Of a stretch of DNA of 64,000 nucleotides, positions 1 to 14,328 are shown piece after piece. Position 1 is the first letter of the stretch, and every line of letters begins with the position of its first letter. A program made the translations under genes and the position numbers. The notes beneath the pieces were generated by a model that was not told the origin of the DNA, did not search any database, and saw only the letters and a program-made list of their open reading frames with translations. Source of the DNA: Adineta vaga (lineage: Eukaryota; Animalia; Rotifera). The stretch lies in NCBI GenBank assembly GCA_021613535.1, contig CP075494.1, positions 5,146,001 through 5,210,000 of the forward strand, given 5' to 3'.

Positions 1-493
1 GTACCAACCTGTTGACAAGGCTACAACTTTTTGAGAATCAGGATAGAACAATCCATAACATGCACCGCCCCATCCACCGTCACCACCTTGTTGAAAACTA
101 TTCAGCGTCAATACAGCCGAAGATTTTGATGATGGAGAACATTTATATTGTTGATAACTGACACCTGTTTTACAGCATTCAGAAAAATTGTCTGTATTGC
201 ATGCAGTACTATGAAAAGAAGCATATATATAATCTCGTTACAAACCAATGGCAACGTTCTTACCTAGTGCCATGCAATACGCCAAAAGGTGTGCATATTT
301 TATCTTGATCAATATTTTCACGATCACCACACTTTCCACTCAAACAGATCATGTCTCCATCGCAATCATTATATGTTGAACAAGGATCACCAGCACAGTG
401 ACCTATCCAAGAACAAGTAGAAGATCGTGTTTTTCGAATAAGTTTCGATCCTGTAGTGGTAAAAAGTAATAAGAAAACGAATAAAGAAATCAT
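1..493 (-). CDS. Kiwellin / ripening-related (barwin-like DPBB) secreted protein, 3' end outside window
   Basis: Exon 493-264 has a signal peptide and [23 protein letters not shown] (kissper-like). A 55-nt GT-AG intron (263-209) follows. Exon 208-1 reads [69 protein letters not shown], matching plant kiwellin motifs (CSP..., LTLNSFxxGGDGG, VVALSTGW). Confidence 0.92.
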
Positions 494-1599
494 GTGAAAA
501 TCTAAAAGATGATAGAATCGTACGTATTGTATTTAAAACAAAACGTTTAAAAATAATCTGATTTTAATCGATTTTTTAGAATAAAAATCGATTGAAATGT
601 CACAATTTTAGTCGAATTTTTAATTGAAAAAGAATCTTTTTTAATCGATTTTCAATATATCTCTATCAAAATATCGATTTTAAACAGATTTCTAACGGTT
701 TTTTTCTAATCTTTATCGAACGAATCCTGACAAAATGTCGATGCATTCGTGCTTTTTTAATATTGCATATTGATCAAAGAATAACTTTTCAGGTCAATCT
801 CGATCTTTCTTTCTTTCCTTTTTCTTTTCTTTTCTTTCAATGTATATAGGCGTATTATTTCGATAAATAAAGTTAGAGAAAAGAGTAAAGCCCGCGGCAC
901 GTTCGTCTACTTACATTATATTTATTATCATAAATAACATCTCTAATAATGAGTATCTTTCAATCGATCAAATCTGTTCTCTGTTGAATAATTAGTTTGA
1001 TATAAACTCTCCGATTTGCTGCAACAGTATCACAAAAAGTCACATAACAGTTTTAAATAAGATCAAATCATCTCACTATAGAGGAAATCGTTTATATATA
1101 CAAATAGTATTTCAATTCAGCCACATATGTCAAATCAAATATGAACTTCAGTGGTGCTAGAAATTGCGTCATATTTTGAACTTTATTTTTGCTTCATTAG
1201 ATAGATCACGACTTTTTTGAATGGATAACATTAACAGATTCGTTGTCATAGTAATTCCTTGTAACGTTCGATGTTTTCATTGTTTTGTTTTAGAATTCAA
1301 ATGAGATGGAAGAAAGAAGACTTGACGGAGAAATAGATTTCAAATTTCGTCATGAAAACACTGAAGAAAATATACAGAGGTCACTAGTCAATATGTATTT
1401 GCCCATGACTGGTTTACAGTTCTTTTTCTTGAGCGTTTCAGTCGGAAGAACAGAAAAGAAAAGATTGACGATATTTTCATCATACACGTGAAAATGGCCG
1501 TATAAGGATAATATTGTATATTACTCAAATAAACTTAAATATTCTGTTGCAATACTAACATATACAATGCATTGATTTCTGCTTTTTTACTTTAAAACA

Positions 1600-5537: not shown

Positions 5538-6377
5538 ATGATGAAGACAATAATTCAACTCGCTATTGTTTACATTGTATTCATAAAAACATTAGCATCA
5601 ATGTCTACTGGAGCTTCAATGAATCCTAGCATAATATCAACTGTTTCTGATCGTCCACCCGGCTTCGCAATGACATCAGTCTTCAGTAGTTCCCCACCAA
5701 GAGCTAGTGTATTATTTTCATCCATGAATTCTTTTCTAACAAGTTTCAAGCCAGATCCTATCACAAGTGGAAAACCTCCTATTTCTGATTCTTCACCACA
5801 TCCTTTCACAGCCTCGTCAAATCCTAATGGACTTCCGACATTCACCAATCCACCGCCGATAAATTATAGTCCAACAGCAAGCTCTATTGGAGGATCACCT
5901 AGTTCCCGTTTTCCAACAACCATCTCTCCCGGTATAATAAGTCTAAGTACACCATTGATGTTTATCAATCAAGATTCAAGTCCAAGAGAAAGTCCACCAA
6001 TTTCTTTGGCAACTTCGTCAAATCCTAGTAGATCTCCAATAACTACTACTGGTAGTTATCCTTTGACAAGTTCCCATCCATCTACAGGCATTTTTAGTGG
6101 ATCTCCGATGTCGACAAGACTACCATCAACATATCTCAGTGCCTCACAAACTTCTTCTAGTCGGTCTGTCAACACACCTACAACAGGTTCATCATTCAAT
6201 AACAGTAGAATTTCAACCATGTTAAACTCAAGAGGATCATTTACTACCTTTATTGCCACAACTGCTCCTAATACACAAAGTACACTGCAAGTAACTACCA
6301 GTGCTGGTCAAGTTCTTTCGATTTGTCATTCATTGATGTATATTTTTGTTACTCTCCTTTTTACATACTTTCTTTAA
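5538..6377 (+). CDS. Ser/Thr/Pro-rich mucin-like secreted protein, probably GPI-anchored
   Basis: N-terminal signal peptide, low-complexity S/T/P body, hydrophobic C-terminus; TATA-like TATAAAA near 5499. Confidence 0.7.
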   Translation: MMKTIIQLAIVYIVFIKTLASMSTGASMNPSIISTVSDRPPGFAMTSVFSSSPPRASVLFSSMNSFLTSFKPDPITSGKPPISDSSPHPFTASSNPNGLPTFTNPPPINYSPTASSIGGSPSSRFPTTISPGIISLSTPLMFINQDSSPRESPPISLATSSNPSRSPITTTGSYPLTSSHPSTGIFSGSPMSTRLPSTYLSASQTSSSRSVNTPTTGSSFNNSRISTMLNSRGSFTTFIATTAPNTQSTLQVTTSAGQVLSICHSLMYIFVTLLFTYFL

Positions 6378-6625
6378 ATGATTATTATCATTTATAGATG
6401 ACTTATTCATGAACTTGTCCTTTTGAAATGCACTCACAGAATTATGATATCATCATTCCGAAGATTCTTCTGTCTCAGAAATAAAATAAATAACACATAT
6501 ATAACACTTGAACACTCGTTTATATTTATAATCTTCAATATATACTTCGTTTATTCACAAATCAATTACTAATTTGTATGAAATTATTAAAAAAAAAATA
6601 TAATTTTACATGTTGCAGTAAATTG

Positions 6626-7843
6626 CTAACTGCTATTGATAATCGAAATTTGCGCATCTTTATCAGAATAGTTCATGATCACAATAGTTGATGTTTGATC
6701 AACAGCTAATACACGTTGTCTAGCATCTCGGGGTCCAATACGATATGTAGCATTTCCTTTATGGCTAATAACCCACTCTTGAGTGAAATTACCCGTCAAA
6801 ATATCAGTTTTTACTGTACCCATCGATGCTGTAGCACTATACGCGTTGAACAATATTACTCGTACTGTTGTCAACAATATACCAAGACATTTGTTTGTTT
6901 GTGCTTGTGATGAAAGTCGATAAGTACTATTGGCGAGAACACGAGCTAAATCTTCTTGCATTTGCCAATAAGCTGGTTTTGGTTGATAGTCAGCATGAAA
7001 GAGTGATGATTCACCTTCTGTATGATTAGTAGCAGCCGGAATCCAACTATATCGATCTATAAAACCCCAAGTAAGTAATGCTGGAGTTCGCGGAGCAAAG
7101 TGAAAAACATAATCGAGAACAGAACGATAGACAACACCTTGTTTTTTCAATATCAGCAGGATCTTTAGGATCACCATCGACCATTGGAATGCCAATGTCA
7201 AGTTCTGTTACCATTAAATCTAAATTTCTATCAATAAATCGTTGAGCAGTTTGATAATGTACATCTCCCGGAGTGACAGCTACAGAAACTTTTATACGTC
7301 ATTGAATTCCAATACCATGAATAGGAACATTTTCTGATTTTAACCAATCAATAAGTGCAACTACTCGTTCGGTTTTTAATCCTCCTTGTTGAAATCCAAA
7401 ATCATTATAATAAAGATTGAACATGTTCAGGTGTTATAAATGGTTCTCTTTCTAGCAATCAATGAGGAATTCTCATATCATAAGCCCACACTAAAGTATG
7501 TCCACGTAATTGCATTCCATTCTGTTGAACCCACCCAGTTGTAGTTGGCGTTGCACCTAAAAGCCAACCTGAATCAGTAAAGTTATACAGATTCTCACCA
7601 ATCCAATTATATTCAGGCTTTAATTCGAATCCTGACACAATTAATTGATAATTTTTTTACAATCGTAGCATTGTATTGTCCTTGATCAATATCACGTCGT
7701 AAATAGTCAACAAGAGTTGCCGTTCCTAGTAGCAAACCATGGAACGATGCTGATACTTTCAAACCGATTGGATCTTGTGCTTGAATATTCAAATACTTTG
7801 CTAAACAAAATACGAATAAAAATAATATGGTAGTGTTTTTCAT
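6626..7843 (-). pseudogene. GH10 endo-1,4-beta-xylanase with C-terminal ricin-B-like lectin remnant, disrupted
   Basis: Signal peptide; LRGHTLVW; LYYNDF; IHGIGIQ*; MVTELDI (nucleophile Glu); TWGFIDRYSWIP; LFHADYQPKPAY. Two in-frame TGA (near 7461 and 7300), frameshifts in homopolymer runs (~7655, ~7145) and loss of the WDVVNE segment near 7410. Confidence 0.85.
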
Positions 7844-8311
7844 AATTATAACGAATTATTCGACTATTGTTAGTATGCAAAACATGAAATATAATGTGCT
7901 TGTATCGTCGATGAATAAGAGAAACGGAAGGCACATGTGTTAATCTTTCGAAGTCAAATATCAACAAGAAATAAGAATTAATCATATAGACAATACTAGT
8001 ACATGAAGGATTTGAAGATTTTTCTTTCATACTATGACATTCCATCGTGAAGTATTCATCTTGAGAAAAGAAAATCTGGTAAGCTGCACGTATAGATATC
8101 TAATGTGTTGAGATGTTTTACAGAAAAGAAAAGAAAAGAAAAGAAATCTTTTTATCAAGAGATATGAAAAGAAAAAGCAAAGAACATTTGATGACTACAG
8201 AAGATGTCAACAGTTATTGCATTACTCGACGTTTTAACACACGACAGTTTTTTTTCTCGACATTTTTATTCTTTTTCTAGTCTGATTATTTAGATTCTTA
8301 CCTATGAAAAT

Positions 8312-9581
8312 ATGTCTTATTCATTATTTTCTGGTATTCGACGAACATTAATTTCTCCATCAACAGTTACAGAAAAATCCGATGAAGTAATCGGTCACGA
8401 TGTTTTAATTAAATTCCATGCTGCTCATGTAGGTCACTCTATCTATTCTTATTGGTTTAGTTAATTGTTTTTAGAATTTACCAAAAATGGATGTTGTTGG
8501 TACTGCTGATCCTTATTTTCGTGCTAAAATCGATGATGGTCAAGTTGAATTCAGTTCTTCATGTATCATTAAGACATTAAATCCGGTTTGGAATGAAGAA
8601 TGGATAGTAAGAAATATACCTTCAACAGCCAAACTGTTCGTTACCGTCTATGATAAAGATGATGATACACTTTTTGATGATTATATTGGCAAATTTCAAA
8701 TCGATATTCAACCTCTAGAAAATGAATGCATACCAATTCTCGGCTTTTCAAATACTCATCGAGGTACATTTCAATTAAGTATAGAATTACTTCCATCTGT
8801 TGAAGCTCGTCCATATACATTTGATGGTCCTGTTCGTTTTTCTCGTCATAATTCATTAACAGTTGGTCATTTAACAAAAGTAAATGATGAAAGACTTTAT
8901 TCAACTTGGGAAATTCATTTGAAACGTATTGATATTTATTTTGATCGAAATAGAAAACAAAAATGGAATTCATCATATCATGCTGCGAAAAAAATTTTTG
9001 AAGGTCCTATGGCTCATGCTATTCAATCGGTTATTAAACAAGCACATCGAGTTTTATATGCCAAACATACAACAAATGAATTTGGTCTAGTCAGTACGAA
9101 CGAAGATTTTTGGCGATTATTAACCGATATAAATACAAATATGATCAAACCGTGTGTTTACACGTATATTATTGAAGATAATACTTGGCGTTTTAGTGAA
9201 ACGGGTGCTTCATTTTTTGTGGATTTTGCTTCAAAACATGCTCTACATGCCAATTGTGCACAGACAGTTCATTATGCAGGTGAATTTCATCCGCGACCAA
9301 AATGTGGTTGGGATGAATATGATCCAAATGAAATTCTTGATTGGAATCAATGGGAATTAGTCATTGATAATGGTTCAGGAACATATGCACCTGATTTAAG
9401 ACTTCTTAATAAATTACAAGAATTATTAGTATTTAATTTTCCAGATCTGAATGTTGTTACATATGATTTCAAAGATCCAGCATTGATATCAAGTATCAAA
9501 GCATGTCGAGAGTTTGCTAAAAGTCCAAAATCGAAATCGATTCGAACACTGAAATATCTTATACCAACACCATTAACTTAA
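8312..9581 (+). CDS. C2-domain protein with fungal/protist-type C-terminal domain, 2 exons
   Basis: Exon 8312-8428, intron 8429-8474, exon 8475-9581. C2 motifs NLPKMDVVGTADPY, TLNPVWNE, VYDKD..DDYIG; C-terminal SKHALHAN..YAGEFHPRP..LVIDNGSGTYAP. Confidence 0.8.
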
Positions 9582-9661: not shown

Positions 9662-10720
9662 TTAAGTCATTGATGCTACTCCTTGTCGTCGAGCAAGTAA
9701 GAGGAATTGTTGTCGAAGACTTTTTCGAAATAATCGACTTGTTAATGTATTAACATAGAATGTTTTACAATAATTCATATAATAAAACCATCTTGCAATA
9801 AAAGTAAATATAATATATAAAAGAAGATAGTATAAATCTGTTGGTGGTCGATTAAAATATCCATAGAGATAAATAGTCATATATGGAACATTGAAAAGTA
9901 TTGTTACAGTGACTTGCATTAATAACATTATTAACATATGAGAATTATTTCGAATTGAAACTTGTCTAATCTGATTTGTTGATGGTATTGGATCGATTGT
10001 TGTTCGATTACTTCGAGTAGTTTGTTGAGCAGTAACACGTCCTCGACTTCGTTTCATATTGTAACATATTAATAAACCAAAAGCTGATAAAAAAAATGGA
10101 GCAATAGCTCCATTATATAATGCAAAGAAAAATCCATCTATAATCAGATAAGTTGTTGGAGAACCAAGAATAACTTGACATTTAGTAACATTCGTGATAG
10201 GATCAGTGACATAATCATAACCAATGATAATATGTAATTCAAATAAAACCCATAGAATAAAAACGATTCGTACGATCATGCGACTGATCTTCAATTGACT
10301 ACATTTTCGAAGTGTGGTATTCAATGAACTTGCACAAAAGCGATCCATTGATGCAAGTGTTAAATAAGTCGACGATAAACATGGTAAAAGTGAAAGAAGA
10401 AAATTTCCAAATTTACACCAAATTCGTGTGGAATAGATTAATGTCGACAATGGCAAATGAAATCTTGTGATCATTTCTAATAAAAGAAATACATTCATTA
10501 TCCAAAAATCAATAATCGATGTTGATAGAAAATAAACTGAACAAGAATTCATTCGAATTTGTTTTTGAATAAATGTAATTATATTCAAAATTGAACCTAT
10601 CATACCAATGACATACAATCCAACTAACATGCAATTATCTATTGTTAAAATAATTTCTATTGCTCGACCAAGATCAATAGACGGTGCTACTGTTATTGTT
10701 GTTGTTGTTGTGTTCGACAT
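9662..10720 (-). CDS. Orphan class A 7TM GPCR, intronless (tandem copy 1)
   Basis: Seven hydrophobic segments, IWCKF, ASMDRF, NVPY in TM6; likely ATG at 10720. Confidence 0.88.
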   Translation of the reverse strand: MSNTTTTTITVAPSIDLGRAIEIILTIDNCMLVGLYVIGMIGSILNIITFIQKQIRMNSCSVYFLSTSIIDFWIMNVFLLLEMITRFHLPLSTLIYSTRIWCKFGNFLLSLLPCLSSTYLTLASMDRFCASSLNTTLRKCSQLKISRMIVRIVFILWVLFELHIIIGYDYVTDPITNVTKCQVILGSPTTYLIIDGFFFALYNGAIAPFFLSAFGLLICYNMKRSRGRVTAQQTTRSNRTTIDPIPSTNQIRQVSIRNNSHMLIMLLMQVTVTILFNVPYMTIYLYGYFNRPPTDLYYLLLYIIFTFIARWFYYMNYCKTFYVNTLTSRLFRKSLRQQFLLLARRQGVASMT

Positions 10721-12939: not shown

Positions 12940-13983
12940 TTAAGTGTTTGCTCTGGTGAAAAGTGATATTTCATAATGATGAACGAATAGAGTGAATTGT
13001 TTTCGAAGACTACTACGAAATAAAGCACTTGTTAATGTATTAACATAGAAATTTTTACAATAATTCATATAGTAAAACCATCTTGCAATAAAACTACAAG
13101 TAATCAATACAAATAAAGGCAATGGGTCAGCTGGGATCGTTTGATAAAATCCCAATAGATAAATAATTACATATGGGATATTCAGAATAATTGTTAATAG
13201 AACTTGAACTAACAACATTTTAATCATATGACTATTTTGTCGACTACGAACAGTACCTATTTCGATACGTGAGTTGTTATTTCGTCCTTCTACTTGGACA
13301 GCAACTCGGCGACGACTCTTTCTAACATTATAAATAATCATTATACCAAATACCAATAAAAGAAACGGAACAATAGCACCATTAAATAAAGAATAGAAAT
13401 ATCCATCAATTGCAATGAAAACTGCTGCCAAACTGGTTTGTACTGTACAGCGACTTGCATTGGTGATTGGATCTTGAATATAATCATAAGCAATAGGAAC
13501 ATGTAAACCAAATAAAGCCCACATCATCAACATTATAATGACAACAATTCTACTGATTATTAGTCGACTCCATTTTCTCAATGTTTGATTTAATGAACTC
13601 ATACAAAATCGATCAAACGATGCTAATGTTATAAAACTAGATGACAAACAAGTTAATAGAAATGTCAGATAATTTCCCAATTTACACCAAACTCTTGATG
13701 GATATATTCGATTGGAAAGTATTTTATTGAATGTTATTATAATATCTAATAAAATCGTTACGTTCATCAAACATAAATCAAGAATTGAACCTGATAGAAA
13801 ATAAACTGCACATGAATTCTGTCGAATTTGTTTCTGAAGAAATGTTATAATATTTAAAATAGCTCCGACTACACCAGTAATATAAAGTATGACAATCATA
13901 TATGAATCGATAATCAAAAGAATTGCTGAGAGTTTATTAACATCTAGCATAGTAATACCTTTTGTATTAGATATATTCGACAT
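12940..13983 (-). CDS. Orphan class A 7TM GPCR, intronless (tandem copy 3)
   Basis: 7TM pattern, ASFDRF; shares near-identical DNA tracts with copy 2. Confidence 0.88.
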   Translation of the reverse strand: MSNISNTKGITMLDVNKLSAILLIIDSYMIVILYITGVVGAILNIITFLQKQIRQNSCAVYFLSGSILDLCLMNVTILLDIIITFNKILSNRIYPSRVWCKLGNYLTFLLTCLSSSFITLASFDRFCMSSLNQTLRKWSRLIISRIVVIIMLMMWALFGLHVPIAYDYIQDPITNASRCTVQTSLAAVFIAIDGYFYSLFNGAIVPFLLLVFGIMIIYNVRKSRRRVAVQVEGRNNNSRIEIGTVRSRQNSHMIKMLLVQVLLTIILNIPYVIIYLLGFYQTIPADPLPLFVLITCSFIARWFYYMNYCKNFYVNTLTSALFRSSLRKQFTLFVHHYEISLFTRANT

Positions 13984-14328
13984 ATTGATGTTCAAGATGA
14001 GAAATGGAAACGGTTTTTGATCTAAAAAGTTAATTAAATATACGTAAAAAATAGGCTAAATAGTTCTCATGAGTACGAGTATCAGATTTTAAGATGTTCT
14101 ATGACACTTTCTACTGAATAGAGAGAAAAAAGATTTCTTCGCAGTGAAATGTAAAATAGAATATTGTTCTACTTCTTATTATCTTGTTTATAATTTATTA
14201 GCTGAGCTATAATAGTTTATTCATTAGTATTAATATCTAATGTTATATTTAGTTTTTAGAAATCGAACAAGATATTCTAATAAGACAAATTAATTTCATT
14301 ATAAAATAGAAAGAGGAGATTATAAATG

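Follow-up and report, generated by a model that had tools for sequence, protein, structure and literature searches.

[quoted passage not shown]

Introduction

Kiwellins arose in land plants, according to a family survey in which 20,630 proteomes were screened and the family was found in 142 land plants, ranging from bryophytes to angiosperms, and elsewhere only in a single chytrid; the screen reported no animal kiwellins (PMC9813671). The same survey identified the region of the beta3'-beta4' loop as the part that sets kiwellins apart from barwin-like proteins (PMC9813671). Maize KWL1 and KWL1-b bind and block the secreted Ustilago chorismate mutase Cmu1 (PMC9813671; PDB 6FPG, 6TI2), and cotton GhKWL1 binds the Verticillium effector VdISC1 (PMC8306359).

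In bdelloid rotifers, about 10% of the genes are foreign, some of them derived from plants and some induced by fungal infection (PMC11258130). Our full-text literature search found no paper text discussing kiwellin in rotifers. However, the supplementary gene tables of two Adineta vaga transcriptome papers contain a gene flagged “HGT” (FUN_000090 in AV19, equivalent to FUN_005567 in AV20) whose best BLAST match is an Actinidia kiwellin (8.8e-30), with a baseMean of about 0.7. The gene number suggests that this entry is, in all probability, the C1 copy, which is decayed and is described below. A kiwellin in A. vaga has thus been recorded by automatic annotation, and is not described or interpreted in the paper text found.

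Here we analyze an intact copy on contig C5, located at one end of a 64,000-nt stretch of the A. vaga genome (hereafter, the window). An original prediction, made from the letters of the window, had proposed a plant-type kiwellin gene acquired by horizontal transfer, with a spliced intron, a kissper-like module, and a loop indicative of a changed target.

Gene Structure, Splicing, and Transcription

The start codon of the kiwellin gene, an ATG at window position 493 (position 1993 of L001, the locus extended beyond the left edge of the window), opens a 77-codon ORF in the minus-strand reading of window 1-560. The coordinates of the gene, its parts, and its copies elsewhere in the genome are listed in Table 1. 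The intron is AT-rich; its donor GT occupies 263-262 and its acceptor AG 210-209. The frame resumes at position 208, giving a predicted spliced product of 222 aa. The motifs that the original prediction had quoted from the spliced frame are all present when the frame resumes at this position, as is VVALSTGWY. Exon 2 remains open without interruption beyond the left edge of the window to the TAA stop, and the C-terminus that had been anticipated there was found in this 231-nt extension, with the motifs SRCGK, VVDECDS, NNIVDGSPAVWTALG, and ITWSD.

Table 1. Features of the A. vaga kiwellin gene and its copies (window positions unless a contig or L001 is named; G000 is the A. vaga genome)
Feature	Position	Strand	Description
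5' UTR, short	494..503	-	Transcript contigs of runs X1 and X2 end at L001 2003 (window 503), that of X6 at L001 2000
Exon 1	264..493	-	230 nt; 76 complete codons, then 2 nt of the Ser codon that the intron splits
Kissper-like Cys module	329..415	-	Exon-1 residues 27-55, six Cys
Intron	209..263 (L001 1709-1763)	-	55 nt, GT..AG, phase 2; between linker and kiwellin core
Exon 2, in-window part	1..208	-	Double-psi beta-barrel core; PF24300, 6FPG_D, AF2/Foldseek
GGDGG loop singled out by the original prediction	58..87	-	Alignments with rotifer, plant, and PDB sequences
Exon 2 without the split codon	L001:1273-1707	-	145 aa
TAA stop	G000:C5:5145770-5145772 (L001 1270-1272)	-	231 nt past window base 1
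C5 copy	C5, 5.146 Mb		Reference; intact, chromosome-internal
C1 copy (L008)	G000:C1:17569299-17569919 (17.57 of ~18.15 Mb)		77% to C5; decayed
C6 copy (L009)	G000:C6:544865-545263 (0.54 Mb)		77% to C5; decayed
C4 copy (L010)	G000:C4:62941-63069 (0.06 Mb)		85% to part of exon 2; fragment

The kiwellin locus was recovered in 16 public runs from seven studies, and four of these 16 (X1, X2, X6, and X11) were aligned to L001:1001-2300, their division into RNA-like and DNA classes being a guessed label. In each of X1, X2, and X6 (RNA-like, with two organism labels), one contig is missing exactly the intron, a stretch that reads CT..AC on the plus strand and GT..AG on the gene strand, whereas the intron is kept in the DNA-type run X11. 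Exact excision at canonical sites in three runs, against none in the DNA run, is the pattern of spliced mRNA; the 55-nt intron of the original prediction is confirmed. The spliced contigs stop approximately 10 nt upstream of position 493, so that the ATG there is the earliest in the transcript.

The Kiwellin Core

Profile, PDB, and fold searches were run per exon, with exons 1 and 2 treated separately. Exon 2 scored 200.8 bits (E 2.3e-59) against the Pfam family KWL1 (PF24300), which has a curated cut-off of 27 bits. The alignment covers positions 58-201 of the 202 in the profile; positions 1-57 (the C.PSG.L.G region) correspond to exon 1 and lie outside this score. The in-window part of exon 2 alone scored 89 bits. 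The KWL1 match is far above chance. The Pfam search with exon 2 returned no family besides KWL1 at E 0.01 or better, neither Barwin nor DPBB_1. We considered membership in the Barwin/PR-4 family and rejected it, as exon 2 has no match to the Barwin model at this threshold.

The structural evidence agrees with the profile. The best PDB sequence match of exon 2 is maize KWL1 (6FPG_D, E 1.8e-56), followed by 6TI2, 4PMK, and 4X9U. An AF2 model of exon 2 (pLDDT 76, pTM 0.73) retrieved kiwellins as all of its top nine Foldseek matches in the PDB (6FPG, 4PMK, 6TI2, 4X9U), with TM values of 0.64-0.67, E values of 4e-16 to 6e-14, and identities of 54-64%. Far behind these come a loosenin (PcaLOOL12), expansins from bacteria and fungi, and cerato-platanins, and the look-alikes in the ESM Atlas are again labeled “Streptophyta kiwellin.” Profile, sequence, and fold searches all support the kiwellin core named in the original prediction.

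All invariant columns of a 20-sequence alignment of rotifer and plant proteins, nine Cys among them, are present in the C5 gene, as are the framework motifs CSP, GGDGG..C, ALSTGW, SRC, VVDECDS, GCD, PPC, VW..LG, and a Trp near the C-terminus. The beta3'-beta4' loop is of the long Kwl1 type and aligns with the ZmKWL1 loop residue for residue. Overall, the core is a complete kiwellin double-psi beta-barrel with every family-invariant Cys. Both exons together encode 16 Cys, an even number that would fit a fully disulfide-bonded secreted protein.

The GGDGG loop led to a different outcome. The original prediction had noted that it differs from plant GGDGGGPSEC and had taken this difference to suggest a changed target. 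In the alignments, the Gly-Gly-Asp-Gly-Gly and the Cys are conserved, and the position occupied by Trp is variable among rotifer paralogues and plants: the residue following GGDGG is Trp only in the C5 copy, His in its nearest relatives, and Gly in the Rotaria proteins, and maize KWL1, which binds Cmu1, has GGDGGGAAAC. Because these positions vary in plants and rotifer paralogues alike, we do not accept the loop as evidence for a changed target.

The N-Terminal Leader and Kissper-Like Module

Exon 1 encodes a hydrophobic stretch after the start Met that aligns with plant signal peptides, and we treat this N-terminal leader as a putative signal peptide. In a low-confidence AF2 model of exon 1 (pLDDT 65), residues 3-24 form an isolated helix and residues 48-57 a beta-hairpin.

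The kissper domain is defined here as an N-terminal domain of about 40 aa with six Cys. In a comparison with kiwifruit kiwellin 4PMK, exon-1 residues 32-62 match residues 3-32, which belong to its kissper part (E 3.9e-4), and four to five Cys columns are common to the rotifer and plant kissper (C27, C38, C44, C50, and C55 are invariant in the alignment, as is G53). All rotifer modules carry an extra CSW.GHC element in front and are without the plant DDP.VGTHIC tail and its Cys. The rotifer module has gained an N-terminal Cys and lost the tail Cys, which places its six Cys in a new arrangement. From its sequence, we regard the exon-1 module as a variant kissper. The combination of a kissper-like module with a long, Cys-rich Kwl1-type loop is found in the rotifer protein and in Selaginella and Cryptomeria proteins.

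Genomic Context

The window corresponds to G000:C5:5146001-5210000, inside a chromosome-scale contig of a 100.8-Mb genome in six contigs. The original prediction had raised the concern that the gene lies at a contig end or a chimeric join, but the edge of the window is an arbitrary cut 5.1 Mb inside the contig. A 7tm_1 (rhodopsin-family) GPCR gene is located at window 12940-13995, about 12 kb from the kiwellin gene, and a C2-domain ORF at window 8487-9581, within 14 kb of it. The GC content of the kiwellin exons is 38%, compared with about 29% in the flanks and 55-57% in a fern gene and one other relative; the base composition of the kiwellin gene has drifted towards that of its host. The chromosome-internal position, the GPCR in the flank, the host-sized intron, and the RNA contigs together bear out the proposal that the gene is integrated in an animal genome.

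Two other ORFs in the neighborhood were noted. To the left of the window, an uninterrupted, convergent ORF of 383 aa (L001:4-1155, plus strand; G000:C5:5144504-5145655) encodes an aminotransferase of class V (PF00266, E 3e-20), possibly a further gene of foreign origin; it ends about 115 nt from the kiwellin stop, and RNA contigs span both 3' ends. Approximately 6 kb from the kiwellin gene, an ORF at window 6626-7201 (minus strand) matches the C-terminal end of glycoside hydrolase family 10 (xylanase; PF00331, E 1.7e-7). This ORF is probably a single exon of a second acquired gene related to plant walls.

Relatives and Phylogeny

A homologue search gave 1170 matches, of which the closest listed are Rotaria, Adineta, and metagenome proteins with 70-90% identity; the closest named matches are from Rotaria sp. 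Silwood1, Rotaria sp. Silwood2, Rotaria sordida, and A. vaga. Among the matches listed (120 of 1170), land-plant kiwellins are 55-66% identical, and the named non-rotifer matches are land plants plus one chytrid. The published proteome screen evidently missed the rotifer kiwellins.

In a 66-row maximum-likelihood tree, the 19 rotifer rows form one clade with support of 100/99, the tree being unrooted. A deletion of 2-3 residues after the CSP motif is common to all rotifer sequences. In gene L011 of Rotaria sp. Silwood2, an intron of 53 nt agrees in position and phase with that of the C5 gene, and the gene of the fern Ceratopteris is intronless. The Rotaria sp. Silwood2 paralogues are spread over three subclades of the 66-row tree, which indicates that the family diversified early. 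Pairwise dN/dS among rotifer genes is 0.09-0.13, and between lineages dS is close to 1 or higher. The rotifer genes thus constitute a bdelloid-wide multigene clade under strong purifying selection. From the single clade, the shared deletion, the intron site, and the dN/dS values, we infer one capture of plant DNA before the split of Adineta and Rotaria, followed by intron gain, duplication, and differential decay. The horizontal acquisition put forward in the original prediction is supported in this form: the rotifer sequences are monophyletic among those of land plants, and the intron site is shared with the Rotaria gene.

The donor is less clearly placed. Ferns and Sphagnum are sister to the rotifers in a 166-row quick tree (SH-aLRT 96), Selaginella and angiosperm Kwl1 are sister to them in the 66-row tree (89/89), and an AU test does not reject the fern sister (delta lnL 0.32, p 0.48); the two trees and the AU test single out no donor plant lineage. 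Barwin-like proteins are too distant for outgroup rooting over 147 columns, and since the trees are unrooted, the plant-to-rotifer direction rests on taxonomic distribution and not on topology.

Several other sequences are worth recording. In the 66-row tree, the chytrid kiwellin (P0387, from Blyttiomyces helicus) groups with P0310 and P0311 (96/85) and not with the rotifers, and its origin is a question separate from the rotifer capture. An ENA metagenome contig of 1.29 Mb (L017), probably from another bdelloid, carries tandem kissper-kiwellin genes at 7709-8417 and 9677-10557 (dS 0.49) that adjoin VWA7, TRAF/RING, and Peptidase_M10 (matrix-metalloprotease-like) genes; this pair shows ongoing tandem duplication of the kiwellin family. 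A second ENA contig (L015/L016, 686 kb; 6001-6765) has tandem intronless kissper-kiwellin genes with 57% GC that are 13 kb apart. These fall near ferns in a separate, interim quick tree (SH-aLRT 87), a placement that the 66-row tree does not settle, and their source is probably a non-seed plant in the metagenome.

Other Copies in the A. vaga Genome

Three further copies are present in the A. vaga genome (Table 1), all of them dead and near contig ends. The C1 copy has a TAG stop, has lost the GGDGG motif, and has its C-terminal strand replaced; the C6 copy has two TGA stops and one invariant Cys changed to Tyr; and the C4 copy has an internal deletion and stops. The C1 and C6 copies are 96.4% identical over 1.46 kb including flanks. 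Translated, the C1 paralogue corresponds to the named A. vaga protein P0090 (I4U23_005621). The NCBI model I4U23_005621 bridges the in-frame TAG by an implausible out-of-frame splice, and appears to be an annotation artefact over a pseudogene.

Alternative Explanations for the Locus

Taken as a whole, the locus is best explained as an intact, transcribed, and selectively conserved kiwellin that was captured from a plant and kept by the rotifer, a reading that we hold with considerable, if not complete, confidence. Contamination by plant DNA or a chimeric assembly join would account for a protein 55-66% identical to plant kiwellins in a family that the survey has only in land plants and one chytrid (PMC9813671). 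Yet the gene lies 5.1 Mb into a contig of chromosome scale, where a metazoan GPCR is its neighbor, its 55-nt intron is of bdelloid type and occurs at the same site in the Rotaria gene examined but not in the fern gene, the GC content of its exons (38%) is well below the roughly 55% of the fern and the other relative compared, and the locus recurs across the 16 public runs of seven studies; moreover, among the matches listed, no plant exceeds 66% identity, whereas other bdelloids reach 83-90%. Linkage, intron, GC content, bdelloid relatives, and runs exclude contamination for practical purposes, leaving it a negligible probability. Scarcely more credible are ancient vertical inheritance with losses, transfer from rotifer to plant, or several separate captures. 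The unrooted topology by itself gives no direction, and a chytrid also has a kiwellin (PMC9813671), which leaves some room for them. Against the first two, the screened proteomes place the family in land plants, with that chytrid as the single exception (PMC9813671), and the named non-plant matches listed here are only bdelloids and the chytrid; against several captures, the rotifer clade is strongly supported and has in common both the indel and, in the Rotaria gene examined, the intron site.

The decay of the paralogues raises the further question of whether the C5 gene is itself a relic that still yields transcripts but has lost its use. Of the four copies in the genome, three are broken, and the published table gives a baseMean near 0.7 for the kiwellin-like gene, probably the C1 copy to judge from its number. 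By contrast, the frame of the C5 copy is open, none of the invariant Cys is missing, and its assembled transcripts are correctly spliced; its dN/dS is about 0.1 against both orthologues and paralogues, at dS values above 1. We therefore consider it very unlikely that the C5 gene is a relic, and we return to the reading of a captured and retained gene in discussing what it might do.

Possible Functions

If the leader acts as a signal peptide, the protein would be secreted and would act outside the cell, like maize KWL1 and cotton GhKWL1. There, it might bind a protein released by an attacking fungus or oomycete, with the kissper-like module perhaps contributing membrane activity or targeting. 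By analogy with the plant proteins, it is possible, at something like a one-in-three level of belief, that the secreted rotifer kiwellin binds a secreted protein of a fungal or oomycete attacker. The fuller proposal, that a plant immune protein has been kept for tens of millions of years and is used as a trap for fungal or oomycete proteins, with the variable loop as the determinant of specificity, is tentative and somewhat doubtful. The salicylate metabolism on which Cmu1 acts is that of plants, and animals have no obvious equivalent; any target in the rotifer must therefore differ from Cmu1. The labels kiwellin, KWL1, barwin, and RlpA were not found in 200 supplementary files of a study of fungal infection in bdelloids (PMC11258130).

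An acquired, secreted kiwellin could instead have a job unrelated to immunity, in feeding or digestion, for instance by binding the cell walls of plants, algae, or fungi in the manner of expansins or loosenins, or as a structural or adhesive protein. We give this possibility a similarly tentative standing, and a non-immune extracellular role is about as likely as the binding of pathogen proteins. It gains some plausibility from the fold matches that follow the kiwellins (PcaLOOL12, expansins, and cerato-platanins), all members of the DPBB superfamily, from the GH10 xylanase-like fragment, a plant-wall-related foreign gene 6 kb away, and from the habit of bdelloids of grazing microbes and detritus among mosses. 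On the other side, the protein is about 60% identical to the effector-binding ZmKWL1 as opposed to at most about 24% to loosenins and expansins, and it has a variable surface loop and belongs to a family with birth-and-death dynamics, features that are typical of defence genes, though not specific to them. We know of no wall-loosening or enzymatic activity in kiwellins.

A role in defence, which would follow the analogy with the plant proteins, is an attractive hypothesis and not a result. If it were true, an immune module that inhibits effectors would have moved across kingdoms into an animal. Irrespective of function, the locus and its bdelloid relatives show that a kiwellin family is conserved and expressed in an animal lineage, which is a new host lineage for these proteins. 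The protein is also a small, easily expressed candidate for the idea that sexless bdelloids borrow defence tools across kingdoms (PMC11258130), and it offers a natural experiment on kiwellin binding in a host that is without the plant salicylate pathway on which a Cmu1-like effector would act. The surprise is limited, as roughly one in ten bdelloid genes is foreign, plants are a known source, and the kiwellin label was already in automatic tables.

Comparison with Known Systems

Barwin/PR-4 proteins, expansins, loosenins, and cerato-platanins have the double-psi beta-barrel in common with the rotifer protein (Foldseek E 1e-5 to 1e-2) but are only 10-24% identical to it, and the kiwellin-specific loop region is present in the rotifer protein. 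The relation to barwin, expansin, and loosenin proteins is at the level of the superfamily and not of family membership.

As a foreign gene, the kiwellin resembles other horizontally acquired genes of bdelloids in its non-metazoan best match, short acquired intron, host-ward composition, and transcription, as well as in its presence across bdelloid genera and the location of decayed copies near chromosome ends. It differs from them in that its product is no metabolic or biosynthetic enzyme; kiwellin is an immune protein that plants secrete.

Kiwifruit kiwellin (Act d 5; 4PMK, 4X9U) consists of a signal peptide, kissper, and kiwellin core, an arrangement that the rotifer protein would share through its putative signal peptide and variant kissper; the kissper motif PC...NDCDG..IC..GKC is common to both, and the barrel core matches at E about 1e-46. 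However, the beta3'-beta4' loop of kiwifruit kiwellin is short, as is usual in angiosperm Kissper-Kwl1 (PMC9813671), whereas that of the rotifer protein is long, and relative to the kiwifruit kissper the rotifer module gains CSW.GHC and loses the DDP.VGTHIC tail.

Maize KWL1 (6FPG) is the best solved match, aligning over residues 3-145 at E 1.8e-56 with 60-64% identity in the Foldseek alignments. Maize KWL1 and KWL1-b (6TI2) resemble the rotifer protein in the CNT.N.SECC loop, the GGDGG...C loop type, the barrel strands, and the invariant Cys. The maize protein is without a kissper module, whereas the rotifer protein has a variant one; all rotifer sequences are 2-3 residues shorter than maize KWL1 after CSP; and the host of the rotifer protein is an animal.
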